The position numbers and the translations under genes were made by a program. Below the pieces are notes generated by a model, which did no database searches, was not told where the DNA came from, and was given only the letters and a program-made list of their open reading frames with translations. A stretch of 64,000 nucleotides of DNA from positions 62,001-126,000 of the IMG/VR virus record IMGVR_UViG_3300035698_007246. The stretch is one strand, 5' to 3'. How positions within the stretch are numbered: position 1 is the first letter of the stretch; every line of letters starts with the position of its first letter. Positions 56,301-63,440 of this stretch are shown here, piece by piece.

Positions 56301-56834
56301 TTATATTTTGGCTAAATCAGACTTTCTTTTAAATATCATGAAATATGAATGGTTTATTTTTACTCCATCTTGGGGAGTTTCATCATAAATGATTCGATTT
56401 TTATATGCAATGACATCACTTAACACAAATCCAGACTTCTCAGCACACTCTTTCACGTCATATGAGCCACGTAGCTGCCCCATACACCTAAAATCTGTAA
56501 TTCTGACAACTAAGACACCATATTTAAATAACATGGCGTTAAAACGCCCTATGTGGCTTTTTAAAACATCATCGAAATTTTTATTACGAGGGGTTTCAAA
56601 AAAGATAATGTTGTATTTGAAGTCTTTTGCAAATCCTGTGATGTTGTTTGTCTTTGTCACATCAAACAGTTTACTGTTTTCTTGAGACCAATAGTGTGTG
56701 TTTGTCACATCTAACACTTTAGTCTTTCTATTTCGACCACGGAATGGGTCAAAATAGTTAATAATTTTCCCGAATGTCATTTTTACATTTGTATTTTCAA
56801 CAATAGACGGGAAAGGTATTTGAGCTTGAATCAT
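56301..56834 (-). CDS. degenerate amino-methyltransferase-like protein
   Basis: VLDVT, IIFFETP (cf. DPPF), GVLVVRITD, HSYFMIFKR. Confidence 0.45.
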   Translation of the reverse strand: MIQAQIPFPSIVENTNVKMTFGKIINYFDPFRGRNRKTKVLDVTNTHYWSQENSKLFDVTKTNNITGFAKDFKYNIIFFETPRNKNFDDVLKSHIGRFNAMLFKYGVLVVRITDFRCMGQLRGSYDVKECAEKSGFVLSDVIAYKNRIIYDETPQDGVKINHSYFMIFKRKSDLAKI

Positions 56835-57376
56835 AATTTTATATCTTTTAGTCCTTTTACTTGCACTACACAGGAGTCATTTATAGGGAAAGAATGATTA
56901 TGGGGTGTGTTATGATTGGATATATAGAATGCTTTCTTAACACCAGTGTTTAAAGCGTCAATAATAGTCTCTGGTCTATCATCTATAACAACATCATAGT
57001 CATTTTCTTTAAAATGAGCAGTCTTATCAAAACTACCAAGCAATACAATATTGGTTATTTCGGGAAAGTGGGTCTTTATCATACCAACCGTCCCCCATTT
57101 TATTTTATTATCACGAGCGGTTACACAAGCCATGTAATGACCTGCGGATTTCCACTCTTTAATTTTCTTTTTTGAGCCATATGTTGGTTTGAATTTACAC
57201 ATATACTCTGGCATTTTAAACCTCTTATAGCATTCATCACGACCTACAACACCTAATTCTTTCAAATGGTATGTATATTGGCTTCTTAATAGTGGGTTTA
57301 GCTTTAAATCTCGTATTACATCAAAGGGTATAGTATTATCGAACAGTGTGTCATCCAAATCAATAGCAATTCTCAT
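56831..57376 (-). CDS. HAD 5'(3')-deoxyribonucleotidase-like protein
   Basis: IAIDLDDTL, VTAR, VIDDRP. Confidence 0.85.
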   Translation of the reverse strand: MRIAIDLDDTLFDNTIPFDVIRDLKLNPLLRSQYTYHLKELGVVGRDECYKRFKMPEYMCKFKPTYGSKKKIKEWKSAGHYMACVTARDNKIKWGTVGMIKTHFPEITNIVLLGSFDKTAHFKENDYDVVIDDRPETIIDALNTGVKKAFYISNHNTPHNHSFPINDSCVVQVKGLKDIKL

Positions 57377-58840
57377 TTATAAACATCCTTTTAATATATG
57401 TGCTATAACATCAACAGTCCAACCATTACCTAACATCTTATACCGTTGACTATTACTCACAAATGTAATATTCTCCATTTTTAAACCCGATAATTCCACT
57501 TTCAATAAGTTGTGACGCAATTTGTTCAAGTTGTCTATGGATAATTGAATGTTCACTTTGTCCATTACAAATGAAAAGATTTTCAATTCTATTATCAATT
57601 TTATCAAGATTGATATGATGAACTTTTTCATTACTTGTAAGTTGTCGTCCAATACAATCTTCCATAACTTTCCTGTGAACGTCTTTACCATTAATACGTT
57701 TTCTGTATCCACGACTTCCCAATTTATTTTTTTGATTATCTGAGAATAATGGGTCTCTGTGTCGTCTCCAATTTTGGTAATGTTTATTACACATTCCTCT
57801 TGCACCGCCACCCTTTTCTCCAATTTTTCTATCACAATACTTACATTTTTGTTCTGATTGAAATAGTTTTTTAGGTAATTCAACTGAACCATGTCGTTCA
57901 TATCGTTTATAATGTAAAGAACAGAGTTCTCCATATTTATGTGTTGTTGCTTGTCTATTACATCCGCTAACACTACATTTTTGTTTTTGCATAAAAATAC
58001 TCCATTGTTATTTATTTCCTGTGTAATACACATAAAGTATTTATACAAATTCGAAATTTTAGTATAATCATCTGGTACTGTCTGTAATCTTTCACATTCA
58101 ATTGGTGTTAATTTTCGCCACTCAACACCATCTAATATAGCATAATTATATGGGGTTGTGACACGTAATATATTAAATTTATCTTTAAAATTAAAACCCC
58201 CTTTATTGAAACCATGTGGCGTTTCAAAAACTAACTGCCGTCTACATCTATCAAAATATGATTTTAAATCCCCACCTTTAAAATAATGTGCATCAACACA
58301 ATAACTTTTATCTCTATCAACATATCCATGTTCTATAATATTTGTTAATAATACTCCTTTATCTTCAGGTTGTTTAATGTTAGGAATATTAGTCCAATAA
58401 TATCTAACACGATTTTGTGCTGATACTAATACACTATTAATACAAATTGGTTCAACACCCAGATGTTCTGATATAATATCTAAATATTCTTTCTTCATTC
58501 TTACATTCTCGAATAAAAAATATTTAGGTCTACATTCTTTTAGTAATCGGACAAACTCAAAAAACAATTTTGACCGTGGGTCATCAAATGCTAATTGTTT
58601 GCCAGCAAAACTAAATCCTTGACATGGACTTCCCCCAACAAGTAAATCAATCGGTTCTAAATTTTCAGCTCGTACATTACAAACATCACCAAGTTGTATA
58701 GTATCTGGGTAATTATAATCATTTACTTGGTTGGCATATTTATCAATTTCACTACTATAACGTTTATTAACCTTAATACCTAATCGGTCTAAAACTATCC
58801 AGATACATCCCATACCATTAAAAGTACTCAACACATTCAT
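57377..58840 (-). CDS. C5 cytosine DNA methyltransferase with 200-codon in-frame insert between motifs IX and X
   Basis: STFNGMG, GGSPCQGFS, FENV, QNRVRYYW, RKLTPIECERLQTVPDDYT [insert] VSNSQRYKMLGNGW. Confidence 0.9.
   Translation of the reverse strand: MNVLSTFNGMGCIWIVLDRLGIKVNKRYSSEIDKYANQVNDYNYPDTIQLGDVCNVRAENLEPIDLLVGGSPCQGFSFAGKQLAFDDPRSKLFFEFVRLLKECRPKYFLFENVRMKKEYLDIISEHLGVEPICINSVLVSAQNRVRYYWTNIPNIKQPEDKGVLLTNIIEHGYVDRDKSYCVDAHYFKGGDLKSYFDRCRRQLVFETPHGFNKGGFNFKDKFNILRVTTPYNYAILDGVEWRKLTPIECERLQTVPDDYTKISNLYKYFMCITQEINNNGVFLCKNKNVVLADVIDKQQHINMENSVLYIINDMNDMVQLNYLKNYFNQNKNVSIVIEKLEKRVAVQEECVINITKIGDDTETHYSQIIKKINWEVVDTENVLMVKTFTGKLWKIVLDDNLQVMKKFIISILIKLIIELKIFSFVMDKVNIQLSIDNLNKLRHNLLKVELSGLKMENITFVSNSQRYKMLGNGWTVDVIAHILKGCL
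57453..57992 (-). CDS. HNH homing endonuclease nested in the alternative frame of the methyltransferase
   Basis: two CxxxxC/CxxC...CxxHY Zn repeats; VHRKVME...VHHINLDKIDNRIENL...H; GGAG RBS 7 nt upstream. Confidence 0.9.
   Translation of the reverse strand: MQKQKCSVSGCNRQATTHKYGELCSLHYKRYERHGSVELPKKLFQSEQKCKYCDRKIGEKGGGARGMCNKHYQNWRRHRDPLFSDNQKNKLGSRGYRKRINGKDVHRKVMEDCIGRQLTSNEKVHHINLDKIDNRIENLFICNGQSEHSIIHRQLEQIASQLIESGIIGFKNGEYYICE
57461..58060 (-). mobile_element. homing-endonuclease insertion (promoter + RBS + HNH), neither intron nor intein
   Basis: 600 nt separating normally adjacent MTase motifs. Confidence 0.75.
58038..58052 (-). promoter_or_regulatory. late promoter for the nested HNH (GAATTTGTATAAATA)
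   Basis: identical to 26551-26565. Confidence 0.65.
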
Positions 58841-58950
58841 TATATTTTATCCTACACATTTAAATTCTGCTTCTTAGCAATATAATATTTAATTACTTTT
58901 TAGGTGGAGCGGTATCTCCCATTTTTGAACAGAATTAAAAATATTTTAAA

Positions 58951-59262
58951 TTAATATGGATTTTTATTACCAGTTAAAACTTCAGCTTGTTCTGACTGTG
59001 ACATATTTTTTTTCCATGCTTTCTTACCATATTCATTTTCATAACAATACCCTACAATATCAAATGCCGTAGAACCACCAAACATCTTTTCCAAGTCGCC
59101 TTTACATTGATAATTTCGAGTTTTACCATCTTTGCACTCTTTAGGGATACGTTCTATACACAACATATCATCCGGTGGTTGCATACCCTTTGGCATGTGT
59201 GAACTTGTGTTAAATTCTTTTACTTTTCCGCATTTTTTACAGAGGTAATCAAACGTAGGCAT
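58951..59262 (-). CDS. FmdB-family zinc-ribbon protein
   Basis: MPTFDYLCKKCG. Confidence 0.7.
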   Translation of the reverse strand: MPTFDYLCKKCGKVKEFNTSSHMPKGMQPPDDMLCIERIPKECKDGKTRNYQCKGDLEKMFGGSTAFDIVGYCYENEYGKKAWKKNMSQSEQAEVLTGNKNPY

Positions 59263-59272
59263 TCATTTCTCC

Positions 59273-59743
59273 TTATTTCAATTTGTCAATTTTATTTTTT
59301 AAGTTATCTGTATTAGTTTTTAATGTTTTTATAATAGTAACCAATTCTAAAGACCTGGATTTTATTAATCTTGCAGTTTCTTTGTTTGTAGTAATGGGTA
59401 TGTGTAGGTTTTTCATTTCCCGATTAATGGAATTCACTAATTCGGTAACGGTATTGTCTAAATTTTCATGCGTCCGCTGTACACTCATCAACTTTATCTT
59501 GGATTTGTCTAATTTATCAACGATTTTGGAAATCAAATCAAGTGATTTTTGTCTATCATCATCAACTTTAGACATTATTCCAATTAATTTTAATATTACC
59601 TCATCAAATACATCATGTAATTGTTCTTTAAATGCAATATTTGATTTGGTATTGTTTTTATATTGTCTTGTTATCCTATACAACGCATACAATATACATA
59701 CCATTAATATGAAATTAACTATTACTGTTATCATTAGTATCAT
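59273..59743 (-). CDS. TM + coiled-coil protein
   Basis: N-terminal TM. Confidence 0.6.
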   Translation of the reverse strand: MILMITVIVNFILMVCILYALYRITRQYKNNTKSNIAFKEQLHDVFDEVILKLIGIMSKVDDDRQKSLDLISKIVDKLDKSKIKLMSVQRTHENLDNTVTELVNSINREMKNLHIPITTNKETARLIKSRSLELVTIIKTLKTNTDNLKNKIDKLK

Positions 59744-61676: not shown

Positions 61677-62092
61677 CTAAATATTATTTTTATGTTTTTT
61701 AATACTATTATTTCTTTTACTTGTTATACACAAATTATTTAAATGACCAATTTCACATGGGTTCATATTATTCATGAATCCATGATATATATATATATAT
61801 ATATTAATCTTGTGATCAATGGTTCTATACATAGGGTTATTATATTCTTTTGAATTAGTTAATAATTTTTCACCAGTATAATAATCAAAACCATTCCAAT
61901 TTTTAGTTTCTTTACTTATACAACTTTGAAATTACCATCATCATTGATAAATTTTATTACTTCTAATAACATATCTATAATTTGAAACTTATCATTACAG
62001 TTATTTAATTCAGCAATATCAGTTTCATTATCAAGTCCTAAAGTTTCAAATTTATATATTAAATTTTTCTTTGTGATAATTTTATCTTTCAT
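61677..62092 (-). pseudogene. frameshifted HNH-like gene with (AT)10 tract
   Basis: 58-aa N-terminal part stops near 61916; another frame gives WNGFDYYTGE...IDHKINIYIYIYHGF...NLCITSKRNNSIK. Confidence 0.6.
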
Positions 62093-62521: not shown

Positions 62522-62890
62522 CTAAAAATCTAAATTCATTTTATTAATAATTCCCTCTCCTGTGATTATAAAAAGAGGTTTATTTTTTAATTCATCTTCA
62601 ATTGCTTCTCTAACAAGTTCATCACCAAATACATCAATAAACTCATTTGCAGAATCAATCGCTCTCAGAATATCTGTACGTTTTTCCAAATCAAAGTCAC
62701 TGTAAAATATTTTTACAATACCTTCATCATTCCCCTCTTCCTCAATAACCTCTTCCTCTTCAACATCATATCCATCATCATATTCAAAGAGTAAATTATT
62801 GGCACTTTTTATTTCGTTTGTTTCGTTCATTTGTATTTCCTTATTTTTTAAGTTCCACATTCCAGTATAAGTAATTAACCCATTTATCAT
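62522..62890 (-). CDS. acidic hypothetical protein (true start probably MNETNE)
   Basis: AAGGA RBS. Confidence 0.6.
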   Translation of the reverse strand: MINGLITYTGMWNLKNKEIQMNETNEIKSANNLLFEYDDGYDVEEEEVIEEEGNDEGIVKIFYSDFDLEKRTDILRAIDSANEFIDVFGDELVREAIEDELKNKPLFIITGEGIINKMNLDF

Positions 62891-63440
62891 TATCAGTAAT
62901 ATTTTTCATACGTTTTAACCTTGCTATCATACCACCATGATAATTGTCAGCTAATTTTGGAGCCACCGGATTATGACGTAATGACATACCCGCTTCTTTT
63001 AAAGATTTATTACCTTTTTTGCTATTACAATCAGAGCATGAACATACAATATTTTTCCATACTGTCTCACCACCCTTACTTTGAGGATGAACGTGGTCAT
63101 ATGTAAAGTTACTAAGAGAAACTTTACAACCACAATATTGACATCTACCTTTATCTCTATCAAATACATTCTTTCTTGTGAATGCTTGATAGAATTTAAC
63201 CTTTTTGTTGGGTTTAACAAAGTGGAGCAATCTTACAACCGCTGGCATTTTAATAATATCTGAAAAACTATCAAGATATTTATCATATTTTTTATGTATA
63301 ATTTTATCTTCATACTCTTCAATAATTTCAACTTTACCATTCACCCAATCTGAAATTGCGTCCTGCCAAGACATAACTTCTAATGGCATATAAGCAGCGT
63401 TTAATTTTAATACTTGTTCAGACACTACCAACTCCTTCAA
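62841..63440 (-). CDS. McrA-like HNH endonuclease
   Basis: LNAAYMPL, RKNVFDRDKGRCQYCG, TYDHVHP, WKNIVCSCSDCNSKKG. Confidence 0.9.
   Translation of the reverse strand: MKELVVSEQVLKLNAAYMPLEVMSWQDAISDWVNGKVEIIEEYEDKIIHKKYDKYLDSFSDIIKMPAVVRLLHFVKPNKKVKFYQAFTRKNVFDRDKGRCQYCGCKVSLSNFTYDHVHPQSKGGETVWKNIVCSCSDCNSKKGNKSLKEAGMSLRHNPVAPKLADNYHGGMIARLKRMKNITDNDKWVNYLYWNVELKK

Follow-up and report, generated by a model that had tools for sequence, protein, structure and literature searches.

How does an HNH nuclease gene persist out of frame inside a phage cytosine-methylase gene that nevertheless keeps a single uninterrupted reading frame? We addressed this question for one locus within a window of 64,000 nucleotides, positions 62,001 to 126,000 of IMG/VR virus record IMGVR_UViG_3300035698_007246. 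An earlier note, made from the sequence alone, had claimed that the synonymous codons of the HNH gene avoid creating stops in the overlapping methylase frame, and had inferred that ribosomes translate through the insert. The features of the locus were first delineated by alignment, profile searches, and structure prediction (Table 1).

Table 1. Features of the methylase locus and of a comparison gene (window coordinates).
Position	Strand	Feature	Evidence
57377..58840	minus	Uninterrupted 487-aa ORF; C5 cytosine DNA methyltransferase (Dcm type) containing the insert; activity inferred	ORF list; Pfam PF00145, 132 bits against a cutoff of 22, E 3.1e-38; motifs PCQ, ENV, QxRxR, GN(G/A/S), IX, and X seen in alignments with insert-free homologs; AlphaFold pLDDT 85-95 for the core
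58055..58840	minus	Methylase part upstream of the insert (aa 1-262): motifs I-VIII, variable target-recognition region, and motif IX ending ...LQTVPDDYTKI	Alignments
57461..58054	minus	Insert of 594 nt, 198 host-frame codons (aa 263-460)	Absent from insert-free homologs (L001 and L002 among those aligned); contigs of related insert-free methylases in the same metagenomes differ by exactly 594 nt (skips of 600, 607, and 612 with 6, 13, and 18 other letters); no Pfam or PHROG hit in the host frame; host-frame pLDDT 25-40
57453..57992	minus	HNH endonuclease ORF (179 aa), in the frame that starts at host codon position 3; its stop codon TAA overlaps the codons of the conserved Ser-Asn at the start of host motif X	Pfam HNH_3 (PF13392), 30.8 bits against a cutoff of 24.8; PHROG HNH families, E 2e-18; invariant Cys, His, and Asn residues in 20 relatives, including H106, H125, H126, N134, N138, H148, and H152; AlphaFold mean pLDDT 87; stop-codon overlap seen throughout the family
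58000..58003	minus	GGAG Shine-Dalgarno-like motif 7 nt upstream of the HNH ATG, inside the methylase reading frame; function inferred	Read from the sequence; AGGAG or AAGGA at the same place in about half of the relatives, the other half lacking a clear motif
57377..57460	minus	Methylase part downstream of the insert (aa 461-487): motif X VSNSQRYKMLGNGWTVDVIAHIL, then the stop, which directly abuts the ATG of the next gene at 57376	Alignment; pLDDT 79-91; ORF list
62841-63440		Free-standing HNH gene	13 stops in its +1 frame

The HNH ATG lies 848 nt into the methylase ORF (848 mod 3 = 2), such that the methylase frame is the +1 frame of the HNH, as the earlier note had stated. In this arrangement a host-frame stop requires an NTA codon followed by A or G, or an NTG codon followed by A. 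Reading the HNH codon by codon, we found 19 Leu, Ile, or Val codons before a purine-initial codon. Eighteen of these were NTT or NTC, and one was TTG before G. The only NTA codons (TTA CAT, TTA CCT, CTA TTT, and TTA TTC) preceded pyrimidines. ATA accounted for 0 of 14 Ile codons against 35% in the window's genes, and GTA for 0 of 5 Val codons against 27%. Overall, the HNH ORF contained 0 stops in +1 and 33 in +2. The observation made in the earlier note is confirmed.

To determine whether the open frame could have arisen by chance, we carried out the codon-shuffling comparison that had been set as a test beforehand, with a refutation line of 5%. The exact dynamic-programming probability of zero +1 stops, given the HNH protein and the codon usage of 61 other ORFs in the window, was 3.4e-5. 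Permuting the synonymous codons of the HNH itself, which are already depleted in NTA, gave 0.032. Both values fall below the line, although the latter is only modest evidence for the window taken alone. In comparison, the window's other genes had 0.071 +1 stops per codon, and their longest +1-open run was 107 codons. The avoidance was also specific. A-ending codons were over-used where the second base is not T (0.83 against 0.59 in the genome) and under-used where it is T (0.13 against 0.37).

Having established stop avoidance in the window, we asked whether it is shared by relatives. Relatives were found by tblastn with the HNH alone, such that they were not selected for an open frame. All 26 non-redundant relatives (42-64% identical) lie at the same motif IX/X junction of diverse C5 methylases, and the site is identical in methylases with different target-recognition regions and different motif X variants. 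All 26 had 0 stops in +1 and 15-36 in +2, with per-locus probabilities from 1e-11 to 5e-3. As the family members share ancestry, these probabilities are not fully independent. Three methylase proteins (P0002, P0003, and P0004) were likewise found to carry the same open insert, with nested HNH ORFs. Across the family, NTA occurred 129 times before a pyrimidine and never before a purine, and NTG was never followed by A. Met was never followed by Ile, Met, Thr, Asn, or Lys (0 of 112, about 36 expected), so even the HNH protein sequence is constrained. By contrast, of 42 low-GC HNH relatives from genomes, the 39 free-standing ones had 4-69 +1 stops, with a median of about 13 (the median of all 42 is 13). 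The only three with zero stops are also nested in methylases.

Two relatives provided a natural control, as they use genetic code 25, in which TGA encodes Gly. These loci (L035 and L036) contain ATG-ACN and TTG/CTG-AAT, which write 3 and 2 TGA codons in the host frame, respectively, but they still have no TAA or TAG. The constraint therefore follows translation termination and not DNA sequence. Downstream of the insert, methylase motif X stays in frame and under purifying selection, with dN/dS of 0.10-0.43 in related pairs. From the same DNA and at the same alignment depth, AlphaFold folded the HNH frame well and the host-frame insert poorly, while motif X still packed confidently. Five independent lines (the open frame of the relatives, the family codon rules, the code-25 loci, purifying selection on motif X, and the absence of any intron or intein signature) support the interpretation in the earlier note, that purifying selection acts on the apparently junk frame because ribosomes translate through the insert.

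We conclude with high confidence that this is a ShiLan-type mobile element, a homing-type HNH endonuclease gene inserted out of frame into a phage DNA methylase gene, here a C5 cytosine methylase, at the hinge between motifs IX and X. In this model the element is removed neither from the RNA nor from the protein. Ribosomes starting at the methylase ATG would read through the insert in the host frame and make a 487-aa methylase whose catalytic core carries a loop of about 198 residues, probably disordered, hydrophilic, and acidic, before continuing into motif X, which the enzyme needs. Tolerance of such a loop between motifs IX and X is an assumption of the model. The HNH protein would be made separately from its own internal GGAG-plus-ATG start and would end on the stop codon written across the host's Ser-Asn codons. 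As a host-frame stop would cut off motif X, selection would keep the frame open by three means: use of NTT/NTC for Leu, Ile, and Val before purines, avoidance of NTG before A, and exclusion of Met before residues whose codons begin with A. Our analysis demonstrates the stop avoidance, its conservation across the family, its dependence on the genetic code, the conservation of both the HNH and the methylase flanks, and the lack of splicing signatures. In contrast, the absence of splicing itself, accumulation of the full-length protein, its activity as a methylase, initiation of the HNH at the internal ATG, and cleavage and homing by the HNH into insert-free alleles are inferred from DNA sequence alone.

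The closest described system is the ShiLan domain, an out-of-frame or hidden HNH insertion in mycobacteriophage DNA methylases (Arsenault, Gosselin & Gogarten 2025, PMC11855218; first noted in PMC9957025). Both are insertions of about 200 codons at a conserved site of a phage DNA methylase, with no host-frame stop, no intron or intein signature, and a host-frame peptide that is poorly structured in AlphaFold. In both, the HNH ORF begins at host codon position 3 and ends at the very end of the insert. ShiLan and Bombitas share the frame offset of 2, and the window HNH is homologous to the HNH nested in ShiLan gp65 (tblastn, 35.5% identity over 104 aa, aa 40-143, E 2e-6). A disjunct, homing-like distribution may be a further similarity, subject to the caveat on dS given below. 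However, ShiLan gp65 is an N6/N4 methylase (PF01555), so the host family and site differ, and the window element does not belong to the same insertion lineage. The genome studied here is 30% GC, against about 63% for the ShiLan locus, making the open frame here statistically meaningful. The window HNH starts with an ATG behind a GGAG motif, while a leaderless GTG was proposed for ShiLan. The published description reports no codon-level or selection test and, in the sections we consulted, mentions no alternative-code case. The arrangement itself is already known; new here are the C5-methylase host and site, the codon-level proof, and the code-25 control.

In 6 of 7 informative pairs, element dS (0.34-0.77) was clearly lower than host-gene dS (1.1-1.9 or saturated), while in the seventh (loci L016 and L020) it was 0.35 against 0.56. 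This pattern, and the occurrence of the element in methylases with unrelated target-recognition regions, fits horizontal movement, but dual coding may also lower dS. DNA contigs of 2017-2019 carried the identical allele, with no microdiversity and no insert-free allele of this same phage.

Homing endonuclease genes are thought to survive inside genes by hiding in self-splicing introns or inteins. The ShiLan report proposed a third route, simple read-through of an out-of-frame endonuclease gene, but worked only in GC-rich mycobacteriophages, where an open alternative frame is weak evidence, and without a test of selection. This AT-rich locus and its roughly 30 relatives provide that test: the avoidance is specific at the codon level, reaches the amino-acid level, is absent from free-standing relatives, and shifts as predicted when TGA is reassigned to glycine. 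Our results also extend the phenomenon to C5 cytosine methylases in aquatic, gut, and rumen phages, and explain why the frame relation is always the same. For genome annotation, they imply that long methylase ORFs with an unalignable block of about 200 residues should be checked for a nested HNH gene. The arrangement is in addition a natural model of a 180-codon dual-coding region and of insertion tolerance in C5 methylases.

Of the alternatives we considered, the one that survives best, though it is unlikely, is that ribosomes do read through but the methylase is dead. The frame would then be kept open only to avoid premature termination, with consequent polarity on the abutting downstream genes, mRNA decay, or a toxic truncated protein. 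The junction of the methylase stop with the next ATG suggests translational coupling, and phage methylases are often dispensable (PMC11855218). However, motifs I-IX, and motif X beyond the insert, are intact and in frame in all of about 30 loci, and the post-insert segment has dN/dS of 0.10-0.43 at saturated dS. Moreover, HNH-frame ribosomes already terminate only 77 nt from the next gene, so polarity alone would not require the second frame to be open.

An unusual intein, translated through and then removed by protein splicing, is more doubtful still. It would also require an open host frame, and the residue after the insert is Ser. Such an arrangement exists: three further loci (L007-L009) carry an out-of-frame HNH with 0 +1 stops inside a recognisable intein, in a gene that we read by eye as a terminase large subunit, and inteins with out-of-frame or antisense homing endonucleases are reported in bioRxiv 10.1101/2025.01.02.630785. 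In those cases a Hint splicing domain flanks the endonuclease and removes the insert from the protein. L009 (0 +1 stops and 30 +2 stops) served as a positive control and gave Intein_splicing at E 1.9e-7, while no Hint or intein Pfam family was detected in the host-frame insert of the window. Only about 21 host-frame residues precede the HNH start and none follow its end, too few for splicing blocks. The first and last insert residues vary, there is no His-Asn, the Ser belongs to motif X in insert-free homologs too, and AlphaFold shows no fold in the insert. As Pfam and PHROG scans of the host-frame insert found nothing, the reading of the insert as a real domain was rejected as well.

A self-splicing, group I-like intron is similarly unlikely. 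HNH genes are common in phage group I introns, and the 5' leader of the window insert faintly resembles the start of motif X, a feature discussed as intron-like for ShiLan. This resemblance, which would suggest a duplication of the motif X start as reported for ShiLan, is shown by the window and one relative (L003), but across the family it was not above shuffled controls (15.8 against 14.9 +/- 3.8), and we do not claim it. An apparent DNYT-like repeat at the 3' end is explained by the conserved HNH C-terminus. A permissive Rfam scan of 56800-59400, at E up to 10, gave only noise hits, with no intron or other credible family. Only about 60 nt lie between motif IX and the HNH ATG and none after the HNH stop, as the ORF runs into the downstream exon, which leaves no room for a ribozyme core. 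An intron would not need an open host frame, yet 27 of 27 standard-code members have one, and the rule changes with the genetic code.

Chance or foreign codon usage, for which the NTA-poor codon set of the HNH (own-codon permutation gave a stop-free frame in up to 15-18% of cases in two relatives) is the main argument, is refuted by the family as a whole (summed log10 P of -151 under host usage and -63 under own-codon permutation, the loci not being fully independent), by the over-use of A-ending codons wherever they cannot make a host-frame stop, by the free-standing relatives, by the value under genome codon usage, and by the code-25 exception, which fits translation and not composition.

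We also compared the HNH with intron-encoded or free-standing HNH homing endonucleases such as I-HmuI (PDB 1U3E). These share an HNH catalytic motif with DNA-binding modules, a phage context, and insertion at conserved sites of conserved genes. I-HmuI was the top Foldseek match to the predicted HNH structure, but not significantly (E 0.86), and a profile search of the PDB with the HNH alignment found nothing. At this locus no ribozyme is present, and in our model the host gene is kept usable by read-through and not by RNA splicing. Promoter-like sites around the HNH start were not above chance (17 against 11.5 +/- 3.3).

A more speculative possibility, which we regard as tentative, is that read-through in the +1 frame is a general third way, beside introns and inteins, for homing endonuclease genes to stay harmless inside essential or useful genes. 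On this reading the host-frame peptide would be more than tolerated junk, being shaped through the endonuclease's synonymous sites into an innocuous hydrophilic, acidic, disordered loop. Its conservation beyond what HNH conservation imposes was only slightly above a stop-free recoding null (0.332 against 0.299), and residual shared ancestry is not excluded, so we make no strong claim of sequence-level selection on the insert peptide. Compared with stop-free recodings, however, the observed host-frame peptides were less hydrophobic in 92% of 26 loci (mean z -2.0) and more negatively charged in 100% (mean z -3.1). The over-used A-ending codons of the HNH put A at host codon position 2. The same +1 arrangement recurs at three or more methylase sites and inside an intein, and +1 is by far the cheapest frame to keep open (P = 3e-5 against 1e-21 for +2).

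The DNA has 30% G+C and matched a 223,879-bp IMG/VR viral contig (L006) at 100%; the runs that hold it are salt-lake metagenomes. On the minus strand it contains an uninterrupted ORF which Pfam recognised as a C5 cytosine DNA methylase (PF00145, E 3e-38). A second ORF nested within it matched Pfam HNH_3 above the cutoff and PHROG HNH families at E 2e-18. As the HNH ATG lies 848 nt into the methylase ORF, the methylase frame is the HNH +1 frame. Alignment with insert-free homologs (uncultured phage MedDCM-OCT-S42-C7 and Cellulophaga phage phi12:1) placed the additional material between motif IX (...LQTVPDDYT) and motif X (VSNSQRYKMLGNGW...). Contigs of other methylases in the same metagenomes joined the two flanks with a net difference matching the insert length exactly.

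Coordinates of the features at the locus and in related sequences
Sequence	Coordinates	Strand	Feature
window	57377-58840	minus	C5 cytosine DNA methylase ORF, 487 aa
window	57453-57992	minus	Nested HNH endonuclease ORF, 179 aa
window	57461-58054	minus	Insert, 594 nt (methylase aa 263-460)
window	62841-63440		Free-standing HNH
window	56301-57376		Two downstream genes (181 aa and 177 aa)
window	58040-58068	plus	Sigma-70-like match (TTTATA-17-TATAAT, 10 of 12)
window	57386-57466 and 58034-58114		Methylase motifs X and IX, used for word depth
L035	57-1709		Nested element and methylase, contig Ga0247608_10028715
L036	199-1776		Nested element and methylase, contig Ga0326512_10078883
L009	993-3290		Gene containing an intein with an out-of-frame HNH
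L037	1870-2418		Region compared with L038
L038	2501-2629		Region compared with L037
L048	1656-3083		Mycobacterium phage Bombitas gp109
L103	1839-3926		N6/N4 methylase with nested HNH

The HNH ORF fills the insert apart from a leader of about 60 nt, which carries GGAG 7 nt before the ATG. The HNH stop codon is written across the Ser-Asn codons of the host at the start of motif X, and the same holds throughout the family. The best sigma-70-like match in the region lies antisense to the methylase, just upstream of the insert, although promoter-like sites are not above chance in this AT-rich stretch. Two downstream genes are packed tightly against the methylase, with its stop codon abutting one ATG and the two genes overlapping by 4 nt. 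The 181-aa protein matched phrog_420 (unknown function), while the 177-aa protein weakly matched a DNA methyltransferase PHROG (E 8e-5).

The earlier note had claimed that synonymous codons of the HNH avoid creating stops in the overlapping methylase frame, and this observation proved correct in every detail. Nineteen Leu/Ile/Val codons precede a purine, of which 18 are NTT or NTC and one is TTG before G. All four NTA codons precede pyrimidines. ATA is absent, although it makes up 35% of Ile codons in the other genes of the window, as is GTA (27% of Val codons). The +1 frame has 0 stops, compared with 33 in the +2 frame. Given the HNH protein and the codon usage of 61 other ORFs, the exact probability of a stop-free +1 frame is 3.4e-5. 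Permuting the HNH's own codons, which are already skewed, gave 3.2%. Both values fall below the 5% line above which the claim was to count as refuted. In comparison, other genes have 0.071 +1 stops per codon and a longest +1-open run of 107 codons, and the free-standing HNH has 13 +1 stops. The avoidance is specific, as A-ending codons are over-used where they cannot create a host-frame stop (0.83 against 0.59) and under-used after a T (0.13 against 0.37).

To place the locus in a comparative context, we searched the protein database with only the host-frame insert. This revealed three other long methylase ORFs with the same insert at 47-54% identity. The two examined as DNA (L003 and L004) each hold a nested HNH ORF. 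A tblastn-based scan with the HNH alone, which does not select for an open second frame, gave 29 metagenomic relatives at 42-57% identity. Counting L003 and L004 as well, there are 26 non-redundant standard-code relatives, at 29-44% GC. All have 0 stops in +1 and 15-36 in +2, with per-locus probabilities ranging from 1e-11 to 5e-3. All of them sit between motifs IX and X of C5 methylases which differ widely in their variable regions and even in the motif X subtype (RYKMLGNGW, LYKQAGNS, and RYKCLGNAV).

Pooling the family revealed the codon rules behind this pattern. NTA occurs 129 times before a pyrimidine and never before a purine. NTG is followed by C, T, or G (59, 55, and 60 times) and never by A. 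Met is never followed by I, M, T, N, or K (0 of 112; about 36 expected), such that the overlap constrains the HNH protein itself. Controls were drawn from bacterial and archaeal genomes. Among 42 HNH relatives with ORFs of at least 100 aa and below 45% GC, 39 have 4-69 +1 stops (the median of all 42 is 13). The three with zero stops are themselves nested in methylase ORFs.

Two relatives on phage-like, rumen-type metagenome contigs (L035 and L036) provided a natural experiment, as they use genetic code 25 and decode TGA as glycine, as in Gracilibacteria/SR1. In each, fourteen TGA codons stand in the HNH frame at positions that align with conserved glycines, and the glycines of GNGW in the methylase are also written TGA. 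Here the host frame does contain TGA, 3 and 2 times, arising from exactly the combinations absent elsewhere (ATG-ACN, TTG-AAT, and CTG-AAT). TAA and TAG remain at zero, against 27 and 22 in the +2 frame. The constraint therefore follows what terminates translation, and not a DNA or RNA motif.

We next considered whether the insert could be removed by splicing. An intein is not supported, as profile searches of the host-frame insert returned no Hint or intein family, nor any other family, and its junction residues vary. As a positive control, L009, and also L007 and L008 (IMG/VR UViGs 3300019731, 3300019728, and 3300019706), contain an out-of-frame HNH inside a recognizable intein. In L009 the intein (CIAEGT...ILVHN|C; Intein_splicing E 1.9e-7) lies in a gene we read by eye as a terminase large subunit, Pfam having named only its intein. 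Its endonuclease is an HNH of 208 aa with 0 stops in the host frame and 30 in the other frame. A permissive Rfam scan gave no intron at the locus, and there is no room for a ribozyme. With equal alignment depth (20 sequences), AlphaFold modeled the HNH frame at a mean pLDDT of 87. In contrast, the host-frame insert reached only 25-40, while the methylase core (85-95) and the motif X helix (79-91) were confidently predicted.

In related pairs, the post-insert segment has dN/dS of 0.10-0.43 at high dS, and no locus has a broken methylase frame. In six of the seven informative pairs, element dS (0.34-0.77) is clearly lower than host-gene dS (1.1-1.9 or saturated). In the seventh pair (relatives L016 and L020) it is 0.35 against 0.56. 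This fits horizontal movement between methylase genes, although dual coding may also depress dS. In the salt-lake metagenomes, word depth over methylase motifs X and IX is about 28 times the depth of this phage (about 280 against about 10 in run X1). Many other, mostly insert-free, C5 methylase genes with near-identical motif DNA therefore coexist and are potential homing targets. The phage's own allele is identical in runs from 2017, 2018, and 2019. Two nearly identical contigs carrying relatives (L037 and L038) differ by two substitutions in 946 nt. One of these is a nonsense codon in the L038 HNH (TTA to TAA at codon 43), which reads Tyr to Asn in the still-open methylase frame. This single case may represent HNH decay with the host frame retained.

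Our data support the interpretation in the earlier note, which had inferred purifying selection on the apparently junk frame because ribosomes translate through the insert. In the mechanism we propose, ribosomes translating the methylase would read through the insert to make a methylase with a loop of about 198 residues at the hinge before motif X, while the HNH would be translated independently from its internal start. The frame relation is always the same, and the likely reason is cost. For this HNH protein, a stop-free +1 frame has P = 3e-5 against 1e-21 for +2. Selection on the read-through frame is demonstrated statistically and by the alternative-code control, whereas the full-length active methylase and cleavage by the HNH are inferred from sequence alone. 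Beyond stop avoidance, host-frame peptides of the window insert and related loci are less hydrophobic and more acidic than stop-free synonymous recodings of the same HNH proteins predict (mean z of -2.0 and -3.1, with 92% and 100% of 26 loci below the null). This hints at selection for an innocuous loop, although sequence-level conservation of the peptide is only marginally above expectation.

This type of arrangement has been published as the 'ShiLan domain' (Arsenault, Gosselin & Gogarten 2025, PMC11855218), a 202-aa insertion without host-frame stops in mycobacteriophage methylases. It hides an HNH in the third frame and has no intron or intein signature. The window HNH is homologous to that of ShiLan (35.5% identity, E 2e-6) and has the same frame offset. 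However, ShiLan gp65 is an N6/N4 methylase in a locus of about 63% GC, and the paper contains no codon-level or selection analysis. The present locus places the arrangement in a new host-gene family and at a new site, and the statistical demonstration and the code 25 control are likewise new.

Out-of-frame HNH genes with open host frames were also seen at other methylase sites. One site lies right after motif VIII (QRRRRVF) of C5 methylases, in bacterial MAG contigs L050, L053, L055, and L059 and in mycobacteriophage Bombitas gp109. In a further bacterial MAG contig, L052, the insert begins earlier, shortly after the ENV motif. Another, in L103, is at the ShiLan-like site of an N6/N4 methylase.
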